From Eutreptiella sp. 'Long Island Sound 2002' (taxonomy: Eukaryota > Protista > Euglenida), in contig OZ038378.1 in assembly GCA_964036045.1 (NCBI GenBank), forward strand, positions 3,410,001 to 3,474,000: DNA of 64,000 bases, in the 5' to 3' direction. Positions 1-39,646 of this stretch are shown one piece after another. Under the pieces are notes generated by a model that ran no database searches, had not been told where the DNA came from, and saw nothing but the letters and a program-made list of their open reading frames with translations. Positions within the stretch are counted from its first letter, which is position 1. Each line of letters opens with the position of its first letter. Made by a program: the position numbers and the translations under genes.

Positions 1-283
1 CCGCCACTTTCTTGGCAACGTCGTCGTAGTTGATGGATCAGATCTGTCCTCGCTCCTTGGTCTTGTCAATCTGCAAATCAGTAATCTTTACCTTCACTGC
101 TTTACCATTCTCCTTCCGCAGCCACTGTTGAACGTCGATTGTGAGCTTCATCTCCGGTATTGGCTTCTTCTCACCCTTCTTCTTGCGTCCTTTCTTCGGC
201 GTTTCCCCTTGGTCGGTCCCTGGTGACGACTCCATGGCCTCTACGTCTGTTGCTGAACGTTCTGGCGACCCTGGTTGACTCAT
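1..283 (-). pseudogene. Second ORF of the transposase-bearing region; unknown function; one in-frame TGA; runs off the window edge
   Basis: ORF 283..38 (MSQPGSPER...KERGQI) continues in frame past TGA as SINYDDVAKKVA to the window edge. It is Lys-rich, intronless and on the same strand as the upstream transposase-like ORF. Confidence 0.4.
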
Positions 284-442
284 GATGCCAAGAAATGCCT
301 GAAAAGGGCAAATGGCATGACATGAAACACGGTCATTTGAACTCCGAAATCAGTCGAAACGGTATTTTGCAGGTCGTTTTCGCAAATCTGTTGCACAACC
401 GTCTTTGCTGTGACCAATTCCACCGGACTTAGCGACCTACTC

Positions 443-521
443 AGTGCGCGAGGCCTCGCGCACTCACATCGCATTACGGACCTGTTTTTCGTATCGTTTA
501 GTGCGCGAGGCCTCGCGCACT
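443..521. repeat. Two perfect 22-bp palindromes AGTGCGCGAGGCCTCGCGCACT
   Basis: Exact copies at 443-464 and 500-521, between the two minus-strand ORFs. Confidence 0.95.
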
Positions 522-656
522 GCGGGTGTCAGTTACCGCAAGCGTTGCCGCACGTTGCGTGTTGCTGCTTCCTGTCTGTCGGCATCCATATCTGTTCTCC
601 GCCCCACAACAGCATCCAGTTTCCGTTTCAGTTGGTTGGTGGGATTTGTTTTCTGG

Positions 657-2519
657 TCAATGAGGGCATCCAGTACGTTGTGACCAAGTAGCCGGTAGTG
701 GTCGTAACCAAGGGGTTGTGTTGGTGAGGGTGGAAATCTCGGTAACCTCCGCGGCCACGAAGTTGCAACGGTGCTGACTCGGTCGGACTCCCATTCCACA
801 TAGGCCATGCAAATCCGGCAAAAATCTTGTCAGTCGTTGTCGCATCCTGTGTACCAGGTTGTGGGGAACGTTTTGCACACCCACGCGCTTGCCACCAGGA
901 CCAACTTTTAGTAACAAGTAATGGTTTTCCACCTCCTCAACAGTAAAAGAACCGGTGTTTTTCGCCTTGTCCCGCACGAGCTTGCTCAACATCCCTTCTC
1001 CAAACTCCTCTGAGTGTGCCTGACCGGGCAGGTCCTGGTGCCACTTGCTGTTGTACAGCAATGTGCACATGATTGTGCGTTCATACTTCAGTACGGTGTC
1101 ACACGGTCCTCGACGCAGCCTCCGCAACAGACACAAACTCAACTGCAACACCTCCTGAGCTCGTGACCCTGTACCGTTGTTTTCCCCCGACCAGTTGCAT
1201 TCCCGTACTAGGTGACCCAAGTACAACAACAATGGGCACCATTCCAACAACAAATGCAAGACTGCGTTTGCCACAGCTGCCCTGTTGGCATGCGCCGTGT
1301 CACGACCACTGATTGCAGTTGCAGCTTGTGCCTTGCGACGATACGGGCGTAGTATTCTGGGTGTGGCAAGCATCAGCGCAGCAATAGTTTTTTCCATAAC
1401 TATTAGTTTGGGGTATGATAGTATGGTTGAACCAGGGCGTAGCAGACCTTTCCGTAGGTAGTTTAGAATAGGCCAGAACACCCGAAAAGTGTGAGTAACA
1501 ACAAACTTGTAGGCATGCCAAACACCGTAAACTACAGGTACATAACGCAGGTAAGCACGCATGTTCCATCGTTGGTTCTTGGCACCGTACAAAAACTTTA
1601 GTATCCTGTAGTGTATGTTTTCGTCAACCAACAGCGGTAGAACTCTGTTTGTCTGTTGTGCTGTGTCCTTTGCAAAGTGCAACAAGTTTAACAGACCAAC
1701 ACCACCAGTTACCTTTTCTTTTGACAGGGCAAACGGGCGCCACACCGGTGCCTGCACAGTCCTTGCATCCCTCCTCACATCCAACGGTGCTCTCACGTTT
1801 CCGGTGTCTGGTACACAACCATCCGCATACCCCATGTCACGCAGAGTCTGGGGGATTCTCCGTTCACGCTGTTGCACAGCCCTTGCAACTGTCGTTATCC
1901 GTGCTGCCAGGTCCTCAATGGCTGGATGTCCTCAGTACATGGGCCTCTGTTTCAGTTGAAGTACTGCCATTGCGGTACAGTTTTGCGACCGGTCACTTTC
2001 ATCTGGGTGTGTCGTGTATTGTGCCCGGTACCAGTTGTCCATCCACAGCACGCAACACGATGCAAGCACCAGTGACCACGTTGCTATAAGTGTTGCTGCT
2101 GCCTGTTCGTCCACTGTATCTGCGGCGGCGTCTGCTTGTCCAAGTCGTACTTTTGTTCGTCTTTCTGTTTGCGTTAGGTACCCTGTTGTGTTTCCCGGTT
2201 TTTTCCTGTTTGGTACTGCCCGTTGACGCATCAACAGGTACAGGTTCCAGCCCTCCTGTCGCAAAATGCGCACCCAGCGCTTGTCCTCTTGCCTTTTAGC
2301 TGCTGGTAAACTGTGGCGCGTTCTTTTGTTGAACCTGAGTCGCTGTGCAAATGTTAACACCAGTTGCGCCGCCACGTCGTTCCGTTTCAGTCCTTTCCAC
2401 AAGTCGTCTGCTGTTTGGTATGCTGGTTCTGCCGCGCATGCCTCTCTTAATGCTGCTGCTCCTTTGCTTCCTTCTGCAATCATTCGATGCGTTACGGATT
2501 TTCTGGCTCGAAGTGGCAT
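657..2519 (-). pseudogene. Unclassified DDE-type transposase-like ORF (~620 codons) split by one in-frame TGA
   Basis: ORFs 2519..1932 and 1877..657 share a frame and join as ...QRPMY*GHPAIEDLAARITTVARAVQQRERR. Motifs in RNase H-fold order: VLWMDN (D1), LPLLVDEN (D2), VYGVWHAYK (GxWH), a helical insertion, then HSEEFGEGMLSKL (E). Superfamily not assignable by eye. Confidence 0.6.
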
Positions 2520-2984
2520 TTTGCGTCTTTCTCTGTTAAATCAAATTTGCGCACATATTTTAATTATCGTTTCGCACAGCGATCTTTAAAAAAAGTGTCT
2601 TTGAAAACATCTGGCTTTTTCCCGTCGTCATTTCTGGTGCGCGTGCTGCCGCCGCAATTTGTATTTGGTGTCTGCGTGCGCTCCGTTCCTAGTAACCGAA
2701 AACCGTTTTTGCAACCACAATTTCCTGTTCTGTTTCCGTCTTTAAACCCAGTTGGAAAAAAAAACCCTATCTATCGGGCAGCGAAGGCTACGGCCGCTAT
2801 TAGAACTGGACACGTCTGCCATTGAGTGGCTGTTGGAAAAAAGCAAATCATTCCCCTGATCCCCTGAAAAATATGACGAAGGTTACCGATGTATAATCGA
2901 CTGTCACAGGTGGTAGCCGTGAAAGGGAATGTAAATACCGGCGTAGCCTGACCTGCCTGCTTTTTCATTTTCTTGCGTGGTTTA

Positions 2985-3418
2985 AGTGCGCGAGGCCTCG
3001 CGCACTGATTGTTTCCGTGGGACAATGTTCTATACCGTGTTATATCTGACCAACACGGTGTCTACACACACATACACCGGAAAAATCAAATGTGTTTGTC
3101 CGTCTGGTACTGTACCTGCAATTGTACGCGTCACATCCATTCTGCAAAATCAATACATAACGTGACCTGAGTGCGCGAGGCCTTGCGCACTCCGGATGCC
3201 GAAATTTATATTTTATTTTTACTTTAGAGTATATGTGTTTCCCCTAACGTGGGAAGTCCGACAGTCATACACTTCCAATGCTCCTTGGTCAACACAATCC
3301 TAGTTTTAATAACGTGTGGGAGCTGTGTATTTCCGCAAACGCCAGTCCTTATGGGTTTTTAGGTTTCTTAATAAACTCTACTTTGAATATCTTGAGTGCG
3401 CGAGGCCTCGCGCACTCA
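2985..3418. repeat. Three more copies of the 22-bp palindrome
   Basis: 2985-3006 perfect; 3170-3191 one mismatch; 3395-3416 perfect and extendable to 26 bp (3393-3418). They sit in AT-richer DNA upstream of the transposase-like ORF. Confidence 0.95.
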
Positions 3419-3618
3419 GAAGGCCAGAGAAATATAAAAAAACGTCACATTGAGGAACACGGAGTTGCACAATACTAAAAAAGCAATTTATTTCACTACG
3501 CCCAAAATCACGTTCATCAAACATCCAAAAAAATAGTTTTTTTGCCCTGTTGCGAACCGGTCTTTTTCTGCGCGTTCGGCGCGCAAAACAGGGTGCAGTT
3601 TGCGTGGGCTAAGTAAGT

Positions 3619-4411
3619 GCTGCCCTACCCCAGGCCTGCCCGGGTTGTTCACCCGGGTGGCGGTGCTACTGTCCACGTAAGTGGGGGTGGGGGGGGGGGG
3701 GGGGGCAGAGGGCACACTACCTGAGTGACCGCTCCCTTAGGGGAAGGGGGGGGGGGTAGGTACACGGAGTCGGCGCCCTTAGGGCCTGAAAAGTGGAGGC
3801 TGTGAAGGGCTCACCGCTTGACTACTGTGGGAATCCCTCAAGCGGCTTGCCCAGGGAACCTCTAGGTGTGCGCGCGCCCCTCCAACTTTATCGCAAACGC
3901 CTCGGTCAGCACAGCCCCGTGCACTCTAGTGGAGTTGTGGGTGACCTCTTGAGGCTAGACAGCCACCAGCTAACCCCACCCGACGGGGGTGCGGGCAGGG
4001 GGGGGGGGGGTTGCGCCTCCTCCCCATGGTGGAAGTCTACCTGTCCCTTCATTGGCTTGTTGTGCTCACTTGTTTGGGAGAGGAGGACCACCTGCTGGGT
4101 TACCATGCGGGTCCCACATCCCAACGTACTCGTCGTTTGGCGTCCTCCCGCTTTCCGCGAGGGGAGGGACCTCGATCACTATGTGTTGGCCTGCATTGAG
4201 GGTGCGAGGGGCATGCTGGGGTGGGGGGGGGGGGGCGTGTGCCGGGCCTGTCTCCGGTCTGGCCCCATTTCTTTTGGGGGGGGAAGGGGCAGCAAAAGGT
4301 CTGCTCCGCTGTTGCCTAGTCTCCATGGGGAACCAGCCCACGGCCTGCACCCTTGCTTTGTGGTGGCTGAAATTTGGGCCGACTGAGTTTATTTGGGGGG
4401 GGGGGGGGGCT
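3619..4411 (+). repeat. 5'-truncated copy of a G/C-tract-rich dispersed repeat
   Basis: Aligns by eye with ~10939-11703, e.g. GCCTGCCCGGG...GGTGGCGGTGCTACTG and GGTGGCTGAAATTTGGGCCGAC followed by poly-G. Confidence 0.85.
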
Positions 4412-5127
4412 GCAGTTGCTTTCAGTGACGTTCGGTTAAGAATTACGCTCATAGATCTTTGTAAACTGCCATGGCTTTTGCTGCGCCCACTCAAGGAACA
4501 CACGGATGCCCATAAGGCTGGGTGTACAGTTACTTGTTGCGCGTTGTGGAGTGCATGCAACTGGGTTTGCTCAAGTTCATATCTAAACCGAATTTCCTGG
4601 CCTCAACATCAACGAGGTCGAAAATGATACAAAGATTGCCGGGGAAGCACTGCAAAAGAAAGCATCATCAATGCAGGAATGAAGGAAGGATGCACAACTG
4701 CACTCTCCGTTTGTGTTTCCGTTACGTTGGTATCTATTCTGTTCAGGCTTCAGGATTTTTTTCAGCAGCAAAGTTGTGCCTCTGAAATACACCCGCCCTT
4801 TTTCTTTTTTCTTTTCATTCAAAAGATCTCCAAAATAGATGTTTGGGATATTGAGCCCTTCGGCTGTTTGCAGCAGCAGCAAACTGAATCCAAGGCTAGC
4901 ATCATTTTGGACTGTGGGTTGGCTATTGGACCCTTTGTAGCAGTTGTGCTTCCAGCAATCTGCCGTAATGTCATCCCATGCCCCAACCATTCTACAGGCT
5001 GCTGCTGCCGATGCCCCTTGCTCGCAGTTCCAATCAACCGTGTCAGTATCATCCGGAATTTAGTCTGTGCCCTCAGAATCCTGCCGACTCCTTGGGGATT
5101 TTTTGACTGCGCATACTACACTTTCCT

Positions 5128-5205
5128 CCACCATCCCACAGTTGTTGTGAGTACAGCACTGTCACCCACCATCCCACCGTTGTTGTGAGTACAACACTGT
5201 CACCC
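5128..5205 (+). repeat. Tandem duplication of a ~38-bp unit
   Basis: CCACCATCCCAC(A/C)GTTGTTGTGAGTACA(G/A)CACTGTCAC present twice. Confidence 0.85.
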
Positions 5206-5949
5206 TCTCAGTGCACCCCCGGATTCCCCATCCTAGTCAAGCTTGCCCTCATCTGCTCCCCCTTCCCCGTCCCTCTGCGATGTCAGCCAAGGCTATGACC
5301 TTTCTGACCCGTGTGCCATCCCTGACCCATGCATCTTGAGCACCATCGCTAACCCAAACCTAGACTCTACCCGTAGATCGAGGCTTTGCGCAAACCATAG
5401 CCTCAGCCCTGGCCCTAATTTTGTTGAGAGCAGCAGTGACAAATTGCAACACGAATGCCAAATGAGGTCTTGTGAGGGGAGGGGGGTCTGCACTTGGTGG
5501 GCCCAGCGCGTTATGGGGGTGGCTTTACTAGAACCGACCTCAAAACCACCCAACCACTTAAAAATCCAGCAGAAGCAAGTCAAAAGCTATGCTCACTCAT
5601 GACATCTTGGTATCCATGAATATAACCCCATACACTTTTGAGCAAGCGGTCAAGCTGTGGGCATCCCACTGGATTACCAAGGACATAGCTGGTATCCGGC
5701 CACAGTACTGCGATCAGAAGGCGACCACCAGCCCGCTGCCTAACCGCGCAAACTACTGAGAGGCCGCAGGGCAGTGTACTCTACTGCTTGTGCATGTAGC
5801 CCTGTCGTGTCTCGGCAAATGGTGCTCAGCAGGCGAGTGTGGAGACAAACCAATGATATGCTGCAAATCGGTTGGACGCTGCAGTTTAGCATTGGGCCCC
5901 CTCGCTGCAGTTATGTCTCTTGTTCAAGATCTTTGTTTCGATCTGTGCC

Positions 5950-6243
5950 ATGCCGGCGGATGCCTCTAAACTGCAAGACAACCCACCCTCCGTCTGCATC
6001 GACGCCTGTCAGCTCCTCACCAAAATCCTGACCAACATCATCGAGAAGCCGCTTGAGGACAAGTTCCGCCGTCTCCGCAAGAGCGGGGCCGCCTTTGGGG
6101 AAAAAGTATGGAAGGTGCCGGGGGGGCGGCATTTCCTGTTCTCCGTGGGCTGGACAGAGGCCGGGGATTTTGTCCAGTTTGAGGCTACACTCCCGGTCTC
6201 GATCCTCCAGGATGGGCTCAGTGCGCTGTGGATTGAGCAACAG
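5950..6243 (+). CDS. Tandem PUB (PUG)-domain protein, exon 1 (PUB domain 1)
   Basis: MPADASKLQ...LLTKILTNIIEKPLEDKFRRLRK...GGRHFLFSVGW matches the PUB pattern (L..il.NI...P.e.KfR.l....l...Gf/w). Ends CAG|gtgcct, phase 0. Confidence 0.85.
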
Positions 6244-7960
6244 GTGCCTTTGCTGCGTCGGGGTACCGTGCTGTGGTGCAACACCGTGACCCCACACAGA
6301 ATCGGGACTCAGCCCAAACCCCTCGGCAAAAGGTGGTGCAACGTAAAAGGGTCGGCAGTGCACGCACGCCGCGCGGATGTACCGCAGCTGTTGCGAATCT
6401 GCAGCTTCGATTTTCGGCTCGAAATTTCCGACTTCATTCAGTTTTGTGAGGTCATGTGTCACTAGGTCAGCACCTACGGGCACTGCACATGCCGTGCACA
6501 CTCTCCTCTGACGAACGCCCTTTGTCCAATGAACGGCATGGACAACAACTTGATACATCAATCAAAATCGATGTATCATGTGCTGCACCACTCCCTCGGG
6601 AGCCAAAAAACGCAGCATTTAGGGCAACTCTGAGTGCTTTCAACGCACCAAGAAGTGATATGTATCTCAGCCTACAGTGAATTGCACGCAAGAAGGAAAC
6701 GTCCGTCTTGTGCTGTGCCTGCTTCATGGTTTGGCGCGGTGTATGCTGCAGGCTCTGGTGTTGTGCGGGCTGCATGGTCTGAGTTTCTACGGAAAGCTTT
6801 TGTGCCTGCTGTGGGGTTCTAGAATTGCAGAACACGCTGCGGTTGAAAGTGCTTGCACAGTGAAAGCACTTGCTCAAAGTATGAGGGAGTTCACACGCCG
6901 TGTCAGGTATTTGAACAACTTCTCCAGGAAATGGTCTACCTTCCCGCCCCTGTATATACTCCCTGTAGATACCCCCCCTGTGTCCAAGACACGTGAAAAG
7001 TAGTGCCATTCATCTGGTATTAAATGCAATGGCTTAGGCAGTATGGGTATGTTTGTGGGTGTAGTGGTGGGCGGTTGGGGGACACGTGGGTTTCTGGTGT
7101 CACTGGTGCGGGTGGGGCCTCGGGCGGTGTGCCTGTGGCGCCTTCGCGGTTTCCGCATGGCATTCCCGTCTGACGATTGCTTTTCTGACCGCGGTTTTGG
7201 TGGTCGAGCATGTGCGATGACACGGATGTGAGCCCCGTGCAGTGGCAGGGGCGTGTCCGAATGGTTTCCGCTCAGGACAACGCTCTGCCAGTGGGGCCCA
7301 TTTGTGCATCGCAGTGGAGCGACTTGGGAACGGATGTGCGCCCCAGAAGACCCACATGTGGCGCGCAAGGACGGTCTGAGCACGGGGGGGGGGGGCACCT
7401 GATGCGGCACGTGTGCAGCGCGGAGATTTAGGCGGCTGACCCGACCAAGCAGCTGTACAGTACCTGGGGGCTGGGCTGGAAGAGCTGTAGTGTCCCTCCG
7501 CTGTTGGGACAAGGGGAGGAAAGATCGACACTCCAGCAGGGTTGACCCCAAACCAAAGGGTGGTGGTTGCTCCCAAGGGGCCATCTTATGTATTTCCACC
7601 TTCAGAGGCATGGATGGGGCAGGACGCAGGGATGTCCGCATAGGTCTTGTACCCAAGGGTTTGCTCTCCTTCAGGGGCATTTGGGGGGCAAAACCAATGT
7701 TTTGCCAAAAACATATGTTTTGCATTCCGGTTCAGGTCTGTTTATATTTTCTTTGGGTAGAGCAGTACATGGACTGACCGGAGACATTACAGATCAGTGA
7801 CAGCAGTGCTGGCAGTTTTGGCTTTGCAGGGAGGAGGTTGGAGAGGCAAAACCCAACCAATGCCGGGTAAACCCGCCGTAAAAGTAGCGCGCGGCGCAGA
7901 TGCTCCCCCCGGGATCCCTGTTTTCTGTAGGTCCCTCTGCCTGTCTCTCTCTGTGCGCAG

Positions 7961-8326
7961 GTAGCGACCCGCCGGCAGGAAGAAGAGTGGCTGGACAGCA
8001 TGGAGCAGAAGGTGCGGCAGGAGGGCCTGGACGCGGTGGGCCCCCGGGAGGCGGACATCCCCAAGGCGGCGGTGGCGGACTTCCCCCCGGCGGCGCGGGC
8101 CTTCTTCGCTGGCGGGGACGACGCGGTGCTGCCGGCCGCGCGGCTCCTGCGGGAAATCTTGGGCCGCATTGTCCGGGAGCCGGACATAGACAAGTTCCGG
8201 CGCTTCAACGCGGGGGCGTACCGGTTCCAGTCCACCGTGGCCTCCCTCCCGGGCAGCGCGGAGCTGCTGCAGGGGCTCGGGTTTGCGAAGGAGTGCGGGG
8301 CCGCGGCGCCACCGAGCGCAGCGCAG
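7961..8326 (+). CDS. Tandem PUB-domain protein, exon 2 (PUB domain 2)
   Basis: Acceptor ctctctctgtgcgcag|GTA, phase 0. Contains LLREILGRIVREPDIDKFRRFN...GSAELLQGLGF. Donor CAG|gtgtgc; high coding-like GC. Confidence 0.85.
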
Positions 8327-8461
8327 GTGTGCGTCCCGTGTAGGGGATTTCGGGGGGTGAGGGCAGGGACACATTAGAATAAGAAGAATGTAAGGAGGAC
8401 CCCCCCCCCCCACACCGGGTCCAAACCCCCCCCTCCGCTTTCCAAGTCACCTGAAAAAAAA

Positions 8462-9979
8462 TCACCTCGAAGAGAGGTTGTTAGATCAAGCGCAGGCGCG
8501 AGCGTCGTATACCCCCCTTTTTTGGGGTCGTTCACGTAGCATACCCCAATGTATGGTTTCTAACGTCTAACCCCCTGTAAAATCATCATTTTAGGACCAA
8601 AAATGATCCCCCAATGATTTTTTGGATTTTGACCCCCGTACCCCCCCCCGCACCGGGGTACCCTTTTTGGGGGGGGGTGGGGGGGGGGGGCAAAACTTCT
8701 TTGTGTATTGTGGCCGCTGTGTGTGTATTTGGACCTGGGTCCTGAAGAACTTTTTTCTTGTATATGGACCCTCTAACCCATGGCGGGGGTCCCGGGTCCC
8801 AACTCCAGGTACCCCCAGTCACCCCCCAATATATGGCCCCTCGCCAATGAGGACTTAGCCGTTTTCACGCTGGATAGGCCGTTTTCACGCTGGATAGGCT
8901 GTTTAGTGGCACGTGAAAGTTTTTTGAAATTCGCTTTTTCATGACTACCCTCCGTTGCCCCTAGGATTGGTTTGGGTGATCATTTGGTGACAATACGGGT
9001 ACTTGAGCACCCATGGGGACCCACGTAGTGGCTGCCATGCCTATGTAGCCCGTGCCATGGGCCCTCCGAAAGCTTCAAAATTGCTGTTGCGTAGGCTGTT
9101 TAGTGACACTTGAAAGTTTTTCACATTTCAACTTTTTCGGAACCCCTTCTGTTGCCCCTAGGATGGGTTTGGGTGATCATTTGGTGACAATACGGGTGCT
9201 TGAGCACCCATGGGGGCCCACGTAGTGGCCACTGGGCCCATCTAGCCCGAGCCATGGGCCTCCCAAAAGCTTCAAAATTGCTGTTTGTAGGTGGTTCAAT
9301 GGCATTTGGGGTGTGCACAAACTGCTCAAGCAGTTTTCCACCCTCTACAGGTCAAAAATGGAAAATTTTTGCAAAATTTTTTTTTGATATTGTGACCACC
9401 TACAATGATGAAATATGCTATGTAGGGCATGTTTTAGACCCCCTTTGCGTGTTTTTCACCCTATTTGGGTGTGGGGGGGGGGTACCAAGGAGTCTAGGGC
9501 ACAACCTGCTTATGTAGTTTTCCCGCCTCAGCAGCTCAAAAATGGAAATTTCCGAAACTGATTTTTTTGATAGTTTGACCATCCAAAATGATCAAATGTC
9601 CTATGTGAAGCGTGTTTTAGCCCCTCTTTATGTGTTCTTCACCCTATTTGGGTGTTGGGTGTGGGGGGGGGGGGGGGGGCTCCCAAGGGGTCTAGGGTAC
9701 AACCTGCTCATGCAGTTTTCCCGCCTCAGCAGCTCAAAAATGGAAATTTCCGAAACTGATTTTTTTCATACTTCGACCATCCAAAATGATCAAATATCCC
9801 ATGTGAAGCATGTTTTAGCCCCTCTTTATGTGTTTTTCACCCAATTTCGGTGTTGGGGGTGGGGTGGCTCCCAAGGGGCCTAGGGCACAACCTGCTCATG
9901 CAATTTTCCTACCTCAGCAGCTCAAGAGTGGTTGTCCCTCTCCCCTCTTCGAGGTGCCTTGCCGAAGGCAATAGAATTT
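8462..9979 (+). mobile_element. Helitron2/Helentron-like non-autonomous element with internal tandem repeats (in intron 2)
   Basis: 5' T then CACCTCGAAGAG (8463-8474). Its reverse complement CTCTTCGAGGTG at 9945-9956 is followed by hairpin TTGCC-GAA-GGCAA and TAGAATTT. Interior has two ~185-bp units (~8900-9290) and about three ~190-bp units (~9350-9925). No TSD seen. Confidence 0.7.
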
Positions 9980-29493: not shown

Positions 29494-31996
29494 GGATGCT
29501 GATTACTGTCCTGCCACTCTGTGCCCGCTCTACACGGCTTTGATGCACCTCCACAGACAAGGCCGTCCGGGCCTAAAGGATAGATTGCTTTGCTGCTTGT
29601 GTCCTTTCACAACGCGCGCAAGCGACAGGTGTGTCAAACAGAGGTGCTGTTTCCGTCATTTTCTGTGCTTGTACAATTGTTCTCTCAGGCGCGGGGGGGA
29701 CACCTGCCCTTATTCCGGTGCACCTCGTTTACTTAGATCAGTTTTATAACAATGGAATTTGCAGTATGAGTGTTCCTCCGTACGCCTGTTTTGGTTTTCG
29801 TTTGGGATGTTGCCTGCACGCCTGTCCGCGTTCTGAGATAAATTGCGCAGCCTTTACCCTTGGGGGAGCCCGAGGTCTGGATTCGTCCCCATCCCCACCT
29901 GACAGCCCAGCCTTGTCCTTGGAGACTGCTCCCTGGCCTTGATGTTGCCTGGCCCTGTCAGATTCTTGTTGGAGAGTGGGCTTTCAGTCGGTCTGGCGGA
30001 CACAGCACTCGACTCCCATTCATCATGTGTGTAGCCCCCCCCCCCCCCCCTTGTCCAGCCGCGCCCATGTCTAGTAAGCGCGGGGGGGGGGGGGACCGTC
30101 ACCTTCCATTTTCCAAATTTTCTTAGAAGGTTGGATATTGCGGTTCTCCTGTGTGTTTGCTGGACGAGGTGCTGATGTTGGTGCATTGCTGTGTACTTCA
30201 AATTTCTTGCATGGAAGGCACTGCACTGCACCCTGTGTCATGCAGAACACTTAGTTTTTCGCAATTTCAGCAGTTTCCGGGTCATTTTGTGGTTCACATG
30301 CCCTCGTGTTCGCTCGGGGGTGCGAGGGAACCCTCACGCGCAGCCCCCCTCAGAGTCAGAGTTGTGGTGGCAGCGTTACCAGGCCCATGGCGGACAACGA
30401 CCTTTTCCACCACAGTGTTGGCTTCCTTCTTCGCTAATTCTCTGTGCAGCCCGGCATGCATGGCTCCGCTTTGAAAATAAGAGACATGCGCCCTCTTGTC
30501 TCCCTTTCCCTTCAGAGGTTGCCTCCGTGTCACATTCAAACAGTAAATTGCAAAAGCAACACCACGGAAGTGTCTATGGCCACCACAACAGTGGTACAGT
30601 AGTGTGCCCTGCGACCGATTGGTTACTCGGAACCCTGCACAGCCGTATGGCCCAGTGCCTTGCGAGTCCTACCAGGACGCCGAATCTGCTTTGCTCAGCA
30701 CCACTACCCCCCCTTGAAACCCCCCCCTTGCAATCCCCCCCCGCCCCGGGGAGACCGTCACTTCACTGTTTTGCTAGGCAATATCCATTGCGGTGGTTTG
30801 TGTTGCCCATCTGTCACACACACGTCCTTGCATTGCTTTCCCATCACTTCAAATCAGTCAGTGTGTGTGTATTCTGTGATATTCTCTCTCCCAATTTGCT
30901 GCGAACTGCTTGCAGCCCGCATTGGATGCCTTTGTGAAGCCCAACCGTTCCTTTGGGTCCCCAGTAACATTTGTGTTGCATGAATCACATTTGCAGGGCA
31001 TCAATGCAAAAGTTGCTTCACCTGTGTGCTGTTTGCTTGCATCGGTGGAGGGTACCACAGTTTGCCTTGAAATATCCTTGCGACCCCCCCCCCGCGGGAG
31101 ACCATCACTTGGCGACCCCCCCCCAATGGGAGACCGTCGCGCGCTACGGTGGGAGATTTCAAGGGGCACCTACTGTATCTTGGGAGATTTTGGTCATGCT
31201 TGGAAAAGCAAATTGTTTCGAGAGCGAGAGAGGGAGAAAGAGAGGGCAGGGGGGTCGCGATGGCAGCGTCCCACTGGGAAGTCACTTCTGTGGTGAGGAC
31301 AAGGGTGATAGAGTTGGCCAAGACCGGCAATCTTCGACTTTTGTTGTTGAATGAGGTTGCTGTAGAGGGAGTATTGTACGCGGTGTGCACGCGGTGCACG
31401 CACGGTGCATGTATTGGGGTTCTTCCATAGACCTACCCACCTATTCGACAGGGAAGTACAAGGTATGACCATTGCACATACTACACCGTGTGCCCTCACA
31501 ATATCAACCATGTCCCTTCCATGGCTTCCTACGGGCATTGTTGTCACCTACACTCGATCAAATGATGACAGGGTGCGTGCCTCCATCATCTCTGCGTGGG
31601 CGTCTGGGCAGTACATGAGCATTGAGCATGACGCTGAAGGTCAACGTGTGTCTCACCCCACAGCGCCTGCTCACCGAATCGAAGATTGCGCACGTAGTCA
31701 TCAGTCTTTATTTTTCAGGAATGAATACGTAAGGGCGGGGGGGGGGGGTGTCTGGGTAGACCCACATAGGGCCGCTTATTCAAACTGGATTTTCCCTCAG
31801 CCAAATTTTGGGTCAAGATTTTTTGGGTGGGTGGGTCTCAGAGCCAAAGGACCTCCCGCCCTCTTATAAACAAAGCTTAGTAGCCGTCCCTCTCCCCAGA
31901 TGGAGATTTTCTGGGTGTCTATTTTAGACGACAATTTCTCCATGTAAATGCGACTCCCAGGCAGGCTCTTGCCGTGAGATTTGTCCCCACAATGTC

Positions 31997-35710: not shown

Positions 35711-35849
35711 GGCTACAGTTTACTGCCCTGGCATTTCTGAATGACCATTTGTTTATCTGTTGTCAGTACTTAGTGCCTGGGGACACAAACCTCCCGCTTG
35801 CCCACCCTTGCCCCAGAAGGCACCAATTCTGTAGCATCTCGACTCGAAC

Positions 35850-36203
35850 GAGGAGTGTTAGTGCGCCAGGCGCGCGCCGGGCATCTTTTTTTTTTACCAT
35901 TCCCCACCCGTGCCTGTTTTTGCCCCCGCTCACCAAACAACCAGGCCAATTTTCGTGAGCCTGCTGTGGCAGCTTTGTCATATGATGCGGGTGTGGTAGG
36001 CAATGATGTGTGCTTGTGCAACTGTGCTTGGTCTCACATTTGCGAAATGGACTCCCTAGTCCCAGTATGTGGGGATACAACTCCAGGGTGTCAGCTGCGG
36101 TCTACTTGGGGGACTTACCTAGGTGGGGATAAATTTGGGGCTAGGACCAGGATACTTAATACAAAGGTCGCGCGCCGGGCACGAGCGGGGCAAACATTGC
36201 CCC
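35850..36203 (+). mobile_element. Probable Harbinger-like family 2 derivative
   Basis: The right ~110 bp are homologous to 53255-53380 (…AAAGGT.GCGCGCCGGG…GGGCAAACATT.CCCC). Left end and TSD are uncertain. Confidence 0.4.
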
Positions 36204-36832
36204 AAAGCAGTCTCAAACTACACCTCAAACATGCATGACTGAAAACCAGAGTGTGCATATTGCATTGACGAGTTGTCATGTGTCGTCACTTGATTAAACC
36301 ACTGGTTAGTCCGTTAGCCAGCGGCATGGTGGCAGCGTACTGCCTACACTCCGTGGGGATGTGCAAGCACGAAAGGCTATACGTAGCATAGGACTGAGGG
36401 AAACATGGTTTTGCACACAGCACACTAGGCCACAATGCATATCATGTGCAACCATGCGCAGCAGTAGGCTGGGGGGTGGGGCACGGCTAACCACTGGGGC
36501 ACGCTGGGCACCAAAGGGCGACCACCGGGGGCGCAAACAGTTGGCGGACAGTTGCAAGGTGCAAGCCACACGCCAACAGCCAAATGAAGGAGGTGCCTCA
36601 CCACACGAATCCTAAAGCAGATCAACTAGCACCGCAGGCCCCAATGCCCACGCAAACAGCAAGCCCTGATGTGCTAAGTGAAACGGCGACCTTGCTTGTT
36701 TCATGAAGTGGAGGATGACAGCATCCCCCCCCGGTGGTCTGTTTGCAACACCAGAGAAGTATGATGACTCTGATTCTCCGGAGGACACTAATCGTGTCTC
36801 AACACGTATGTCAGTCGTGGGCACCCTGCATC

Positions 36833-36868
36833 ACTTTCTGAGTTTTTTTCGTATCTATTTTTTTTCCG
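36833..36868 (+). other. Genomic spliced-leader copy plus truncated SL relic
   Basis: ACTTTCTGAG-TTTTTTTCG followed by TATCTATTTTTTTTCCG, 3 nt before the ATG. Compare the Euglena SL ACTTTCTGAG|TGTCTATTTTTTTTCG. Confidence 0.8.
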
Positions 36869-36871
36869 GTC

Positions 36872-38353
36872 ATGCGCTTTCCCTGGATGCTCATCTTATG
36901 GTTGGCTTGCTTTCATGCAGTTGACTCCGAATCAACAAACACGATTGGCCCTGGTCCCTTCTACCACAACGTCAACGTTGACCACTTTGATGGTTCCAAC
37001 CCAAAAACATGGCCTCAAGCCTACTACATCAATGCTTCCTTTTGGAATCCTGGGAGTAGCGCTCCGGTCTTCCTCTGTGTTGGAGGAGAAGGCCCTCCCT
37101 TGGGTCCCTCGGTGGTCGTGTCGTCTGTACACTGCAATCTGGCTGTCGAACTCCTCAAAGACACCAAGGCGCTACTATTTGCAGTGGAACACCGTTACTA
37201 TGGCTGCCACAATTTGTCCGCATGCCCCGTCCCAGACCCCGCGGCCCCTGGGGCCCTTCGTTACCTTAGTAGCCGCCAGGCCCTCGCCGATTTGGTGGCA
37301 TTTCACGCACATGCCACCCACACCTATGGGCTGACTCCAGCGAACAAGTGGGTCTCATTCGGTGGCTCATACCCAGGGATGCTTGCCGGATGGTCCCGCA
37401 TCAAGTTTCCGCACTTGGTCCATGCCGCTGTGGCCTCCTCTGCCCCCGTGCAGGCGCAGGTGGAAATGCGTGGCTACAACGACCTTGTGGCCCAGGCGTA
37501 CGAAGTACAGGACAATGGGGTCGGGGGCTCTGCAGCGTGCCGCAGGAATATTGCTCTCGGGCATGCCCTGATTGGACAAAACCTGAGCACTGCGGAAGGC
37601 AGGCGATTCCTGGCATCGTTGTTCAAACTCCCGTCTGCGGAGTGGCTAGAGAACCCCGACAACCAGGCGTCATTCGCGGGCAACGGTGTTGCATATTTCC
37701 CCGCCCAGGGCAACGACCCTGCCTGCACGCAGCCCGTGTGCAATATTCGAAAGATTTGTGAAGTGATGACCGGAAGTGACACGGAAGTGGTCGACCTCCT
37801 GGCCAAGGTACGGCAAATGCAGGCTGCTTGGTCACCGGCATTGCTACACAATGACCGCCTCCGTTCATTGCATCGCCTCTTCATTTCACAGCCTTTGTTA
37901 CAAATGCGCAACCCAGTCTGGATCAGAGGGGCCGGTCCTGATCTTTGGGGATACCAGACATGCACTGAGTTTGGGTTTTACCAGACATGCGACGTGGGCT
38001 CCCAGTGTTTCTTTACTCAAGGACTGCAAACCCTAAAGCAGTCCTTGGACTATTGCAAGCAGGCGTTTGGCATCGATGCCATGCAGGTTGCGAACAACGT
38101 ACACTTCTCCAACCTCTACTATGGAGGGCTGCACCCCTCAGGATCCCGTGTGCTGTACGTCAATGGGGAGGTGGACCCATGGCGGGCCTTAAGCATCACC
38201 AATCCGCCTGCGTCCCAAATGCCTGTGCTGTATGTCCCAGGGGCATCGCACCACGCCTGGACTCACCCCAGCGCACCTGGGGACCAGGTATCAGTGGTAC
38301 GGGCCAGAGCAAAGATAAGGCGGCAGGTTGAGCAATGGCTTGTGGAGCAGTAG
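36872..38353 (+). CDS. Secreted serine carboxypeptidase, family S28 (PRCP/PRSS16-like), intronless, 493 aa
   Basis: Signal peptide MRFPWMLILWLACFHAVDS. S28 motifs GGEGP, EHRYYG, LSSRQALADL, nucleophile GGSYPG, YQTCTEFGF, acid NGEVDPW and His motif GASHH. Uninterrupted ORF. Confidence 0.95.
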   Translation: MRFPWMLILWLACFHAVDSESTNTIGPGPFYHNVNVDHFDGSNPKTWPQAYYINASFWNPGSSAPVFLCVGGEGPPLGPSVVVSSVHCNLAVELLKDTKALLFAVEHRYYGCHNLSACPVPDPAAPGALRYLSSRQALADLVAFHAHATHTYGLTPANKWVSFGGSYPGMLAGWSRIKFPHLVHAAVASSAPVQAQVEMRGYNDLVAQAYEVQDNGVGGSAACRRNIALGHALIGQNLSTAEGRRFLASLFKLPSAEWLENPDNQASFAGNGVAYFPAQGNDPACTQPVCNIRKICEVMTGSDTEVVDLLAKVRQMQAAWSPALLHNDRLRSLHRLFISQPLLQMRNPVWIRGAGPDLWGYQTCTEFGFYQTCDVGSQCFFTQGLQTLKQSLDYCKQAFGIDAMQVANNVHFSNLYYGGLHPSGSRVLYVNGEVDPWRALSITNPPASQMPVLYVPGASHHAWTHPSAPGDQVSVVRARAKIRRQVEQWLVEQ

Positions 38354-38435
38354 CACATGCCTGCAGCCCGCGTCTTGAACTCAGTTTTGCCCCACGTGTG
38401 CTTTGCTCAAGGCATGTTCAGCAGAATGGGAGGGT

Positions 38436-38580
38436 GAGAGACAGCTCCCCAGGTAAAGCTGGAACACATGCCAAATGTGGAGCCCTCGTTTGTACTATAT
38501 GCCCTACTTCTTGAACCAGGCGGTTGCCTGAGAGCTCACATTACACTCTTTGAACTTGTTGAGCCTGAGGAAAAAAAAAA
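38436..38580 (+). mobile_element. Short poly(A)-tailed insertion downstream of the S28 gene
   Basis: 13-bp TSD AGAATGGGAGGGT (38423-38435, 38581-38593) around ~145 bp ending in A10. Confidence 0.65.
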
Positions 38581-39646
38581 AGAATGGGAGGGTCTCTTTC
38601 GCCTGTCCCCGGAGGGATGGGGGGGTGATTGATTTGGCTGTCAGGCGAAAATGCCTTCTTTCTCCTCAAGGTCGACGCAGCTTTGACTACGTGTTGTCTG
38701 TCGGCCTCCCTGTGGGTATTGGTCGTGGACAATTGCAATGTGTTGCAGTTTCTGGCCTTTCTCAGTCAAGGGGACTGGCCGACTCATTGGGCAGACTCAT
38801 GTGGCTGTCGTTGCCGTTGCGTGTTCGGCCGGTCAACTCGGTGTGTCGCCTTCCCGCCTTCCCATGTGCCGTCACTCGGGTGTCCAAAAGTCCCATTCAT
38901 TGGTGTTCTGGTGGATCAACTGCCCCTTTGGTGCAGGTTGGGTTGCTCAGGTTTCAACTTGGGGACGGGAACAATTCATTTGCACAGTTGGGGGGCGGTC
39001 GTCTGAGCATATTTTCCGGACCCCCCCCCCAGGTCCAGGAGGGGGGTCAGGGGAGGATCTGGGGTACCCCAACATACACTCAAAAGGATTCCCACGACAT
39101 GCTGATCATTTTGAGGAGACATCATCAAAGTTTTGGAAAGGTGATTTCGGATCGGAGTATTCTTAGATGGCAGTTAGGCGACCCAATGCTGCTGTAGATG
39201 AGAACACTAGCGGGGTCACCAAAGAAGAAAGATGATCCTTGATGCCACAAATTGACAAGGAGGTACCGGAAGATACACGCAATCTAGACTAATCTTGAAG
39301 TCTCGATGACCTCCATCAGTGGCGGAGAAAACCCCCCAAGCTAGCGAGAGCCGATGCAAAACACTGCCCCGGTGTAGCCACTGTGTCCGGTGCCTTTGGT
39401 GTTTGCGATGTACAGCGTCACAGAGCCCACTGCTGGATACTTCATGCACACGGTTTCGGTCCTTCCTGAAGGAGGTGTCTCAACTGCTGGATACCCTGTG
39501 GTGATGCGTTAAAGTTGAGTGTGACGTCCTCATTGACTGGCGAGCCCATGTACAAGGTTAAAGTTACCGCTGAGTACCAGGGAGTACCGGTCGAAATTTT
39601 TGGTGGGGCTGGGGGGGGGGGACCGGGTCTGGCTATCTGTCACTCG

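Follow-up and report, generated by a model that had tools for sequence, protein, structure and literature searches.

A 493-aa S28 peptidase gene in this euglenid genome is preceded by two stacked relics of the organism's own spliced leader (SL), and our best overall reading is that the gene is an SL-tagged retrogene recycled twice through mRNA (probability about 0.68). That it is an old SL-tagged retrogene is highly probable; given a retrogene, two rounds of retroposition are the likely history, and we infer them from the way in which the two leader copies join. The reading builds on the identity of the leader, on an intact intron-free open reading frame (ORF), on a class of leader junction that recurs genome-wide, and on an active SL-headed LINE whose copies carry target-site duplications (TSDs). 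The sequence-only reading had already interpreted the locus as two rounds of retroposition, and its interpretation now stands as the leading inference rather than as a demonstration.

The relics and the gene behind them

The window is the whole 64-kb stretch of DNA that we analyzed (C1:3,410,001-3,474,000). The relic lies 36.8 kb inside it, deep in a 200-Mb contig, and the features of the locus are as follows, with positions in the window.

36832..36851, + strand: outer (younger) SL copy, C + SL nt 1-10 + nt 18-26 (from sequence and alignment)
36841..36842, + strand: AG within the outer copy, after CTTTCT; predicted present-day trans-splice acceptor (from sequence and by analogy with genome-wide junctions)
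36852..36868, + strand: inner (older) relic, SL nt 11-26 (shares its junction with 58 of the 93 exact stacks)
36869..36871, + strand: GTC, what remains (3 nt) of the ancestral 5' UTR between the SL and the ATG (from sequence; a short leader-to-ATG spacing is usual at other relic loci)
36872..38353, + strand: uninterrupted gene for a 493-aa S28 serine peptidase (from ORF, Pfam and PRCP alignment)
38354..38435, + strand: start of the 3' UTR (from sequence; TSD search negative)
38436..38580, + strand: later SINE-like insert of about 145 nt, A-tail to 38581 (from a 13-nt duplication, word depth and contig breaks)

Positions 36832-36871 read C, ACTTTCTGAG, T7CG, TATCTA-T8-CCG and GTC, and the ATG follows at 36872. 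The first block, CACTTTCTGAGTTTTTTTCG at 36832-36851, equals a preceding C plus the canonical 26-nt SL from which TGTCTA and one further T, 7 nt in all, are missing. The second block, TATCTATTTTTTTTCCG at 36852-36868, equals SL nt 11-26 with a G>A substitution at 36853 and one extra C, and it begins directly after the SL-internal AG, at SL nt 11. This is the arrangement originally proposed from the letters, namely stacked SL blocks of which the first is a full SL lacking 7 nt and the second resumes after the internal AG with one substitution and one insertion, and both the text and the alignment bear it out. We scored the locus by local alignment to an ideal stack (C + SL + SL nt 11-26), using 60 first-order shuffles of the window as the control. 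The locus scored 27.0, compared to a shuffled mean of 11.8 (standard deviation 1.2, maximum 15), and the next-best real matches in the window were plain T-runs. A chance resemblance in pyrimidine-rich DNA has in its favor that TTTCTGAG by itself occurs at chance frequency in the window, but the combined alignment lies about 12 standard deviations above the shuffles, and chance resemblance is therefore excluded. Elsewhere in the window, TTTCTGGGTGTCTATTTT at 31908-31925 (+ strand) equals leader nt 4-21 with GAG replaced by GGG, as in other relics, and is probably another decayed leader fragment.

The same 36.8-kb position and 200-Mb contig argue against the companion explanation, that the relic arose from contaminating cDNA or from misassembly, and so do the read contigs of two studies that bridge it. 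A contig from run X1 spans 36000-38466 with 0 differences, and one from run X4, which belongs to another study and carries another organism label, spans 36668-37753, also with 0 differences; the contigs of run X3 leave 36770-36836 uncovered. Reads were examined as contigs only. Three of the runs, of unrecorded kind, look like genomic DNA, as depth does not change between the ORF and its flanks and rises about 2,500-fold on repeats. An exact look-up of the protein led only to an ENA assembly contig, in record ERZ25074135, that shows 7.5 kb of identical sequence; this record could be the same assembly and so is perhaps not independent. The relic is genomic DNA, and the concern raised at the outset, that the contig here had been built from contaminating cDNA, is answered by contigs that continue from the relic into the DNA upstream with 0 differences. 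Chance and artefact together retain a negligible share of the probability.

The ORF behind the relic ends in a TAG at 38353 and matches Pfam Peptidase_S28 with an E-value of 7e-91 over profile positions 3-434 of 434. Its N-terminus is signal-peptide-like, its Ser/Asp/His motifs are intact (GGSY, DPW and HH align with human PRCP, 3n2z), and it is 57-61% identical to homologues from other eukaryotes. By these sequence characteristics it qualifies as a full-length Peptidase S28 (PRCP/DPP7/PRSS16-like), and the description of the gene as an intronless 493-aa S28 peptidase holds, with a single ORF spanning the whole Pfam model. The 37-nt relic has acquired two indels and one substitution, and the 1,479-nt ORF has acquired no frame-breaking indel. 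Because the relic has decayed while the ORF remains open with its catalytic motifs intact, purifying selection on the ORF is implied. The PUB gene that had been called nearby is represented by PUB-domain matches at 6001-6174 and 8123-8293 (+ strand, 2 kb apart, E-values of 4e-12 and 3.5e-4), but these lie about 29-31 kb upstream and are not close.

Expression of the gene is weakly documented: in one estuary metatranscriptome, exact contigs fall only on 37628-38378 and 38682-38876. Two metagenome scans for the locus yielded no contig, and a large protein collection held no protein at least 90% identical among entries 0.55-1.75 times the length of the query, a range that shorter fragments would escape. 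A very high-copy repeat occupies 36000-36233, 600 nt upstream of the relic, where word depth reaches 16,000-44,000 compared to about 20.

Downstream of the gene, we found neither a poly(A) relic of a retrogene nor, when the 40 nt upstream of 36832 were compared with 3 kb downstream, a TSD; the loss of both would be expected of an old insertion. A run of A11 at 38571-38581 was considered as the retrogene's tail and ruled out, since it closes the high-copy SINE-like insert. A 13-nt duplication, AGAATGGGAGGGT, brackets that insert (copies at 38423-38435 and 38581-38593). Word depth within the insert is about 50,000, compared to about 20 in the single-copy flanks (about 2,500 times), and read contigs break at its borders, at 38437 and 38579-38581. 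The insert ends in A10-11 and, judged by the depth ratio, probably exists in a few thousand copies. It has no Rfam or tRNA-like match, and an Rfam search of 35800-39600 gave no match.

The leader, its genomic copies and an SL-headed LINE

We searched the assembly (2.28 Gb in 2,317 contigs) for the 26-nt leader and found 6,449 matches at up to two mismatches, with 0 for the reversed control. Eight of the first 30 loci are SL-RNA genes, with a conserved upstream element, the exact 26-nt exon, and GTAT followed by a conserved intron. The count of SL exon-intron junctions, about 1,296, gives the number of SL-RNA genes, and about 5,000 further SL copies are fused to other bodies. The relic motif is confirmed as the organism's own SL, and the possibility that the organism's SL differs from this motif, which had been named as fatal to the interpretation, has not materialized. 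The SL-RNA genes sit in loose clusters on both strands, kb to tens of kb apart and with no single tight tandem array, at C1:0-0.46 Mb, C3:164.0-164.7 Mb and C9:0-1 Mb.

The 36832 locus is not itself an SL-RNA gene: compared with the SL-RNA genes (L001-L008), in which a conserved upstream element precedes the exon and a GT intron with conserved sequence follows it, the locus lacks the SL-RNA intron signature, and only 3 nt separate its leader from the ATG. The 7-nt-deleted leader was also considered as a variant SL and ruled out, since its one exact match in the genome is the locus at 36832; it is consequently a one-off deletion.

We sampled 22 leader loci that are not SL-RNA genes and found unrelated flanks and diverse bodies. 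An ATG follows within 30 nt of the leader in 21 of the 22, and several of these open long ORFs. Pfam searches of the first ORF at each of ten further relic loci gave a C-type lectin and one FH1 match below the cut-off, and nothing else. The C that leads the relic at 36832 is shared by 19 of the 22 other relics and by position -1 of the SL-RNA genes, indicating that the copied leader is effectively C + 26 nt.

Some of these copies belong to an 8.45-kb LINE family whose full-length members start with C plus the exact SL. Three copies (L045-L047, at C1:10.98, 21.65 and 28.40 Mb; element at about 200-8653) are 99.5% identical, and the identity runs from the leader's C to a short A tail (A5). Two of the three show TSDs, of 16 and 17 bp. 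ORF2 encodes endonuclease (APE), reverse transcriptase (RT) and RNase H domains, and ORF1 an AlkB-like 2OG-Fe(II) oxygenase domain. Near-identical, SL-headed copies with TSDs show that the LINE is active, and that target-primed reverse transcription is copying trans-spliced RNAs into the DNA of this genome. Runs of 8-14 C and a few variable bases precede many leader-headed repeat copies (L054-L092; L011, L012, L025, L026), and could reflect a preference for certain targets or bases added without a template at the 5' junction. In leader-headed copies, the leader often starts with TC, CC, GC, TA or AG in place of AC, a pattern that would follow if RT misread modified nucleotides next to the cap.

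Leader stacks and the number of rounds

We scanned the genome for exact stacks, defined as the 3' end of one leader with the 3' half of another no more than 14 nt further on, and found 93, with 0 in the control. The dominant junction, in 58 of them, is CG/TGTCTA, where the second unit resumes right after the leader-internal AG. About a third (28) show CG/AGTGTC instead, with the AG kept and the second unit resuming after TG (leader nt 7-8). In a further 6 the second leader is full or near-full, and 1-2 flank bases separate the units in some of them; the last stack is a point variant. When up to two mismatches are allowed, the post-AG junction occurs at no fewer than 183 loci, again with 0 in the control. 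The second block at the S28 locus belongs to this class, which is the class that re-trans-splicing at the relic's AG, as first suggested for this gene, would produce. By the same analogy, the AG at 36841-36842 would be the trans-splice acceptor in use today.

The census carries information about how stacks arise. Among the 39 fetched stacks with both units, the bodies are of no fewer than 25 kinds and lie at loci unrelated to one another, and the number of leader units on some bodies varies from one to three. The middle relic of L053, in which GAG is replaced by GGG, has been kept whole, together with one flank base, behind the newest leader; such retention of a whole relic is predicted by splicing from a DNA copy once the internal acceptor has been lost. 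Not one stack junction resumes after G12 (CG/TCTAT, 0 of 76), which argues against a simple one-base microhomology, and an origin of stacks by slippage or template switching at a 1-nt G microhomology is accordingly disfavored. The same bodies are found with either the post-AG or the AG-kept junction, L053-L072 providing examples.

According to the two-round reading, a mature trans-spliced mRNA would have been reverse-transcribed and inserted, making the spliced leader a part of the gene, with the genome's own APE-RT LINE machinery as the most likely source of the enzyme. This first copy would have been transcribed from upstream DNA, yielding a pre-mRNA in which the hard-wired leader's own CTTTCTGAG could serve as the 3' splice site. 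A fresh leader would have been joined right after the AG, leaving leader nt 11-26 in place, and the doubly tagged mRNA would have been retroposed again to give the present locus. Afterwards, the outer copy would have lost 7 nt, the inner copy would have gained its substitution and its extra C, and selection would have kept the ORF open.

The same text would result from a single round of retroposition if the second block had arisen later and in place, by slippage or tandem duplication in the T-rich leader, as a 16-nt tandem copy of SL nt 11-26. The leader is indeed T-rich and prone to indels, of which this locus has two, one deletion of 7 nt and one insertion of 1 nt, and a first-round copy is absent from the assembly. 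However, the duplicated unit would need to start exactly after the AG, and the genome-wide stacks fall into two sharp junction classes with none of 76 after G12. Flank bases between units, seen in L053 and at C8:68142735, are impossible to produce by slippage, and the same bodies carry 1, 2 or 3 units at unrelated loci. We consider an in-place duplication improbable.

A single round could also have copied an RNA that already bore two leaders, or RT could have switched templates onto a free leader exon. The AG-kept class lends weight to this possibility, as it is not explained by canonical AG splicing, and so does the absence of a parent for either intron-free S28 gene. Against an RNA-level double leader, the 10-nt capped leader has no upstream branch site for splicing; against template switching, junctions should scatter, and two sharp ones are seen. 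A variant leader exon ending in AG, a candidate source of CG/AGTGTC, is ruled out because CGAG occurs in 0 of 22 single relics sampled. For analogous dinoflagellate relics, TG has been proposed as a non-canonical acceptor (PMC12014239), and by analogy a TG acceptor may account for the AG-kept class inside the splicing model. We assign this one-round explanation a small probability, similar to that of in-place duplication, and retain two rounds of retroposition as the preferred reading.

The S28 family and what the relics mean

We compared the S28 family by a six-frame search of the 2.28-Gb assembly with the S28 protein as query. Three paralogues, on C27, C87 and C670, each match the query in three separated pieces, with a 1.6-kb gap on C27 and 0.2-0.3-kb gaps on C87 and C670, and are 46-50% identical; a further S28 fragment lies on C24. 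The sequence-only reading had recommended looking for an intron-containing S28 paralogue, and these interrupted loci supply it. None of the three has a leader in the 0.9-1.5 kb upstream that we examined. In contrast, a leader precedes both of the uninterrupted S28 genes (2 of 2, compared to 0 of 3 interrupted paralogues), and the expected link between the SL and intron-free genes therefore holds within this family.

The second uninterrupted gene, L040 (C3:157891597-157895937), encodes a protein 29% identical to the window protein and is a textbook young retrogene with a complete signature. It has a perfect C + leader at 1328-1354, an 11-nt UTR, a 502-aa ORF at 1366-2874, a 780-nt 3' UTR, an A13 at 3655, a 23-bp TSD, and a 16-nt filler at the 5' junction. 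No close parent of L040 is present in the assembly (best matches of 42-60% over short exons). For the window gene, the assembly contains neither a parent nor a first-round copy, the closest paralogue being 48-50% identical, and consequently two losses must be assumed.

An SL-tagged recycling route has so far been published for dinoflagellates, where DinoSL-tagged retrogenes are described as the 'recycling of processed cDNAs' (PMC6050394, PMC12014239, PMC5585692). As in dinoflagellates, the organism's own SL is hard-wired in the DNA at gene 5' ends, relics form stacks in which the inner unit has lost its 5' part up to the leader's internal acceptor, a pattern interpreted as repeated retroposition, and a TG acceptor is suggested. 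Unlike in dinoflagellates, the organism belongs to the Euglenozoa and has an unrelated 26-nt leader, a likely source of the enzyme is visible in the SL-headed APE-RT-RNase H LINEs with TSDs, and the S28 locus pairs decayed relics with a single-copy gene that lacks a parent. A full-text literature search, whose coverage left out the chromosome-scale Euglena genome paper, returned no report on leader relics or SL-tagged retrogenes in euglenids, consistent within that coverage with the original remark that the route was undocumented there.

Like the processed retrogenes of mammalian L1, the euglenid genes are intron-free copies of mRNAs, the young copy (here L040) carries poly(A) and a TSD, and a LINE would be acting in trans. 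Mammalian mRNAs carry no leader tag, so that rounds of retroposition are uncountable there, and mammalian retrogenes need to capture a promoter, whereas here trans-splicing can rescue any read-through transcript. Within the Euglenozoa, the trypanosomatid elements SLACS, CZAR and CRE1 are SL-associated non-LTR retrotransposons that insert site-specifically into SL-RNA genes. In contrast to these elements, the copied RNA here starts with the leader, and the insertions are dispersed among unrelated flanks.

To the known cases, the S28 locus adds a decayed double relic on a single-copy, conserved and parentless enzyme gene, and its analysis adds a genome-wide census of junction classes and a clean within-family contrast. 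Because both intron-free S28 genes, the old one with the double relic and the young L040, are parentless in a 2.28-Gb assembly, we tentatively suggest, as a possibility that we think rather less probable than its opposite, that LINE-driven write-back of trans-spliced mRNAs is a regular gene-turnover route in euglenids that replaces intron-bearing genes outright. If so, the hard-wired leader would be a ready-made trans-splice acceptor, and promoterless copies would be expressed from any read-through transcript. Replacement of this kind would go some way towards accounting for why intron content is patchy and the genome huge and rich in repeats.

As molecular tags, leader relics allow retroposition to be recognized, and its rounds counted, without a parent gene, a property used so far for dinoflagellates. 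If the same is true in euglenids, one could count directly, in a 2.3-Gb genome, how often genes are born, lose introns or are replaced, and this recycling route would have arisen convergently in two unrelated trans-splicing lineages. The conserved lysosomal-type serine peptidase of the cell would then exist only as a second-generation, RNA-derived copy.
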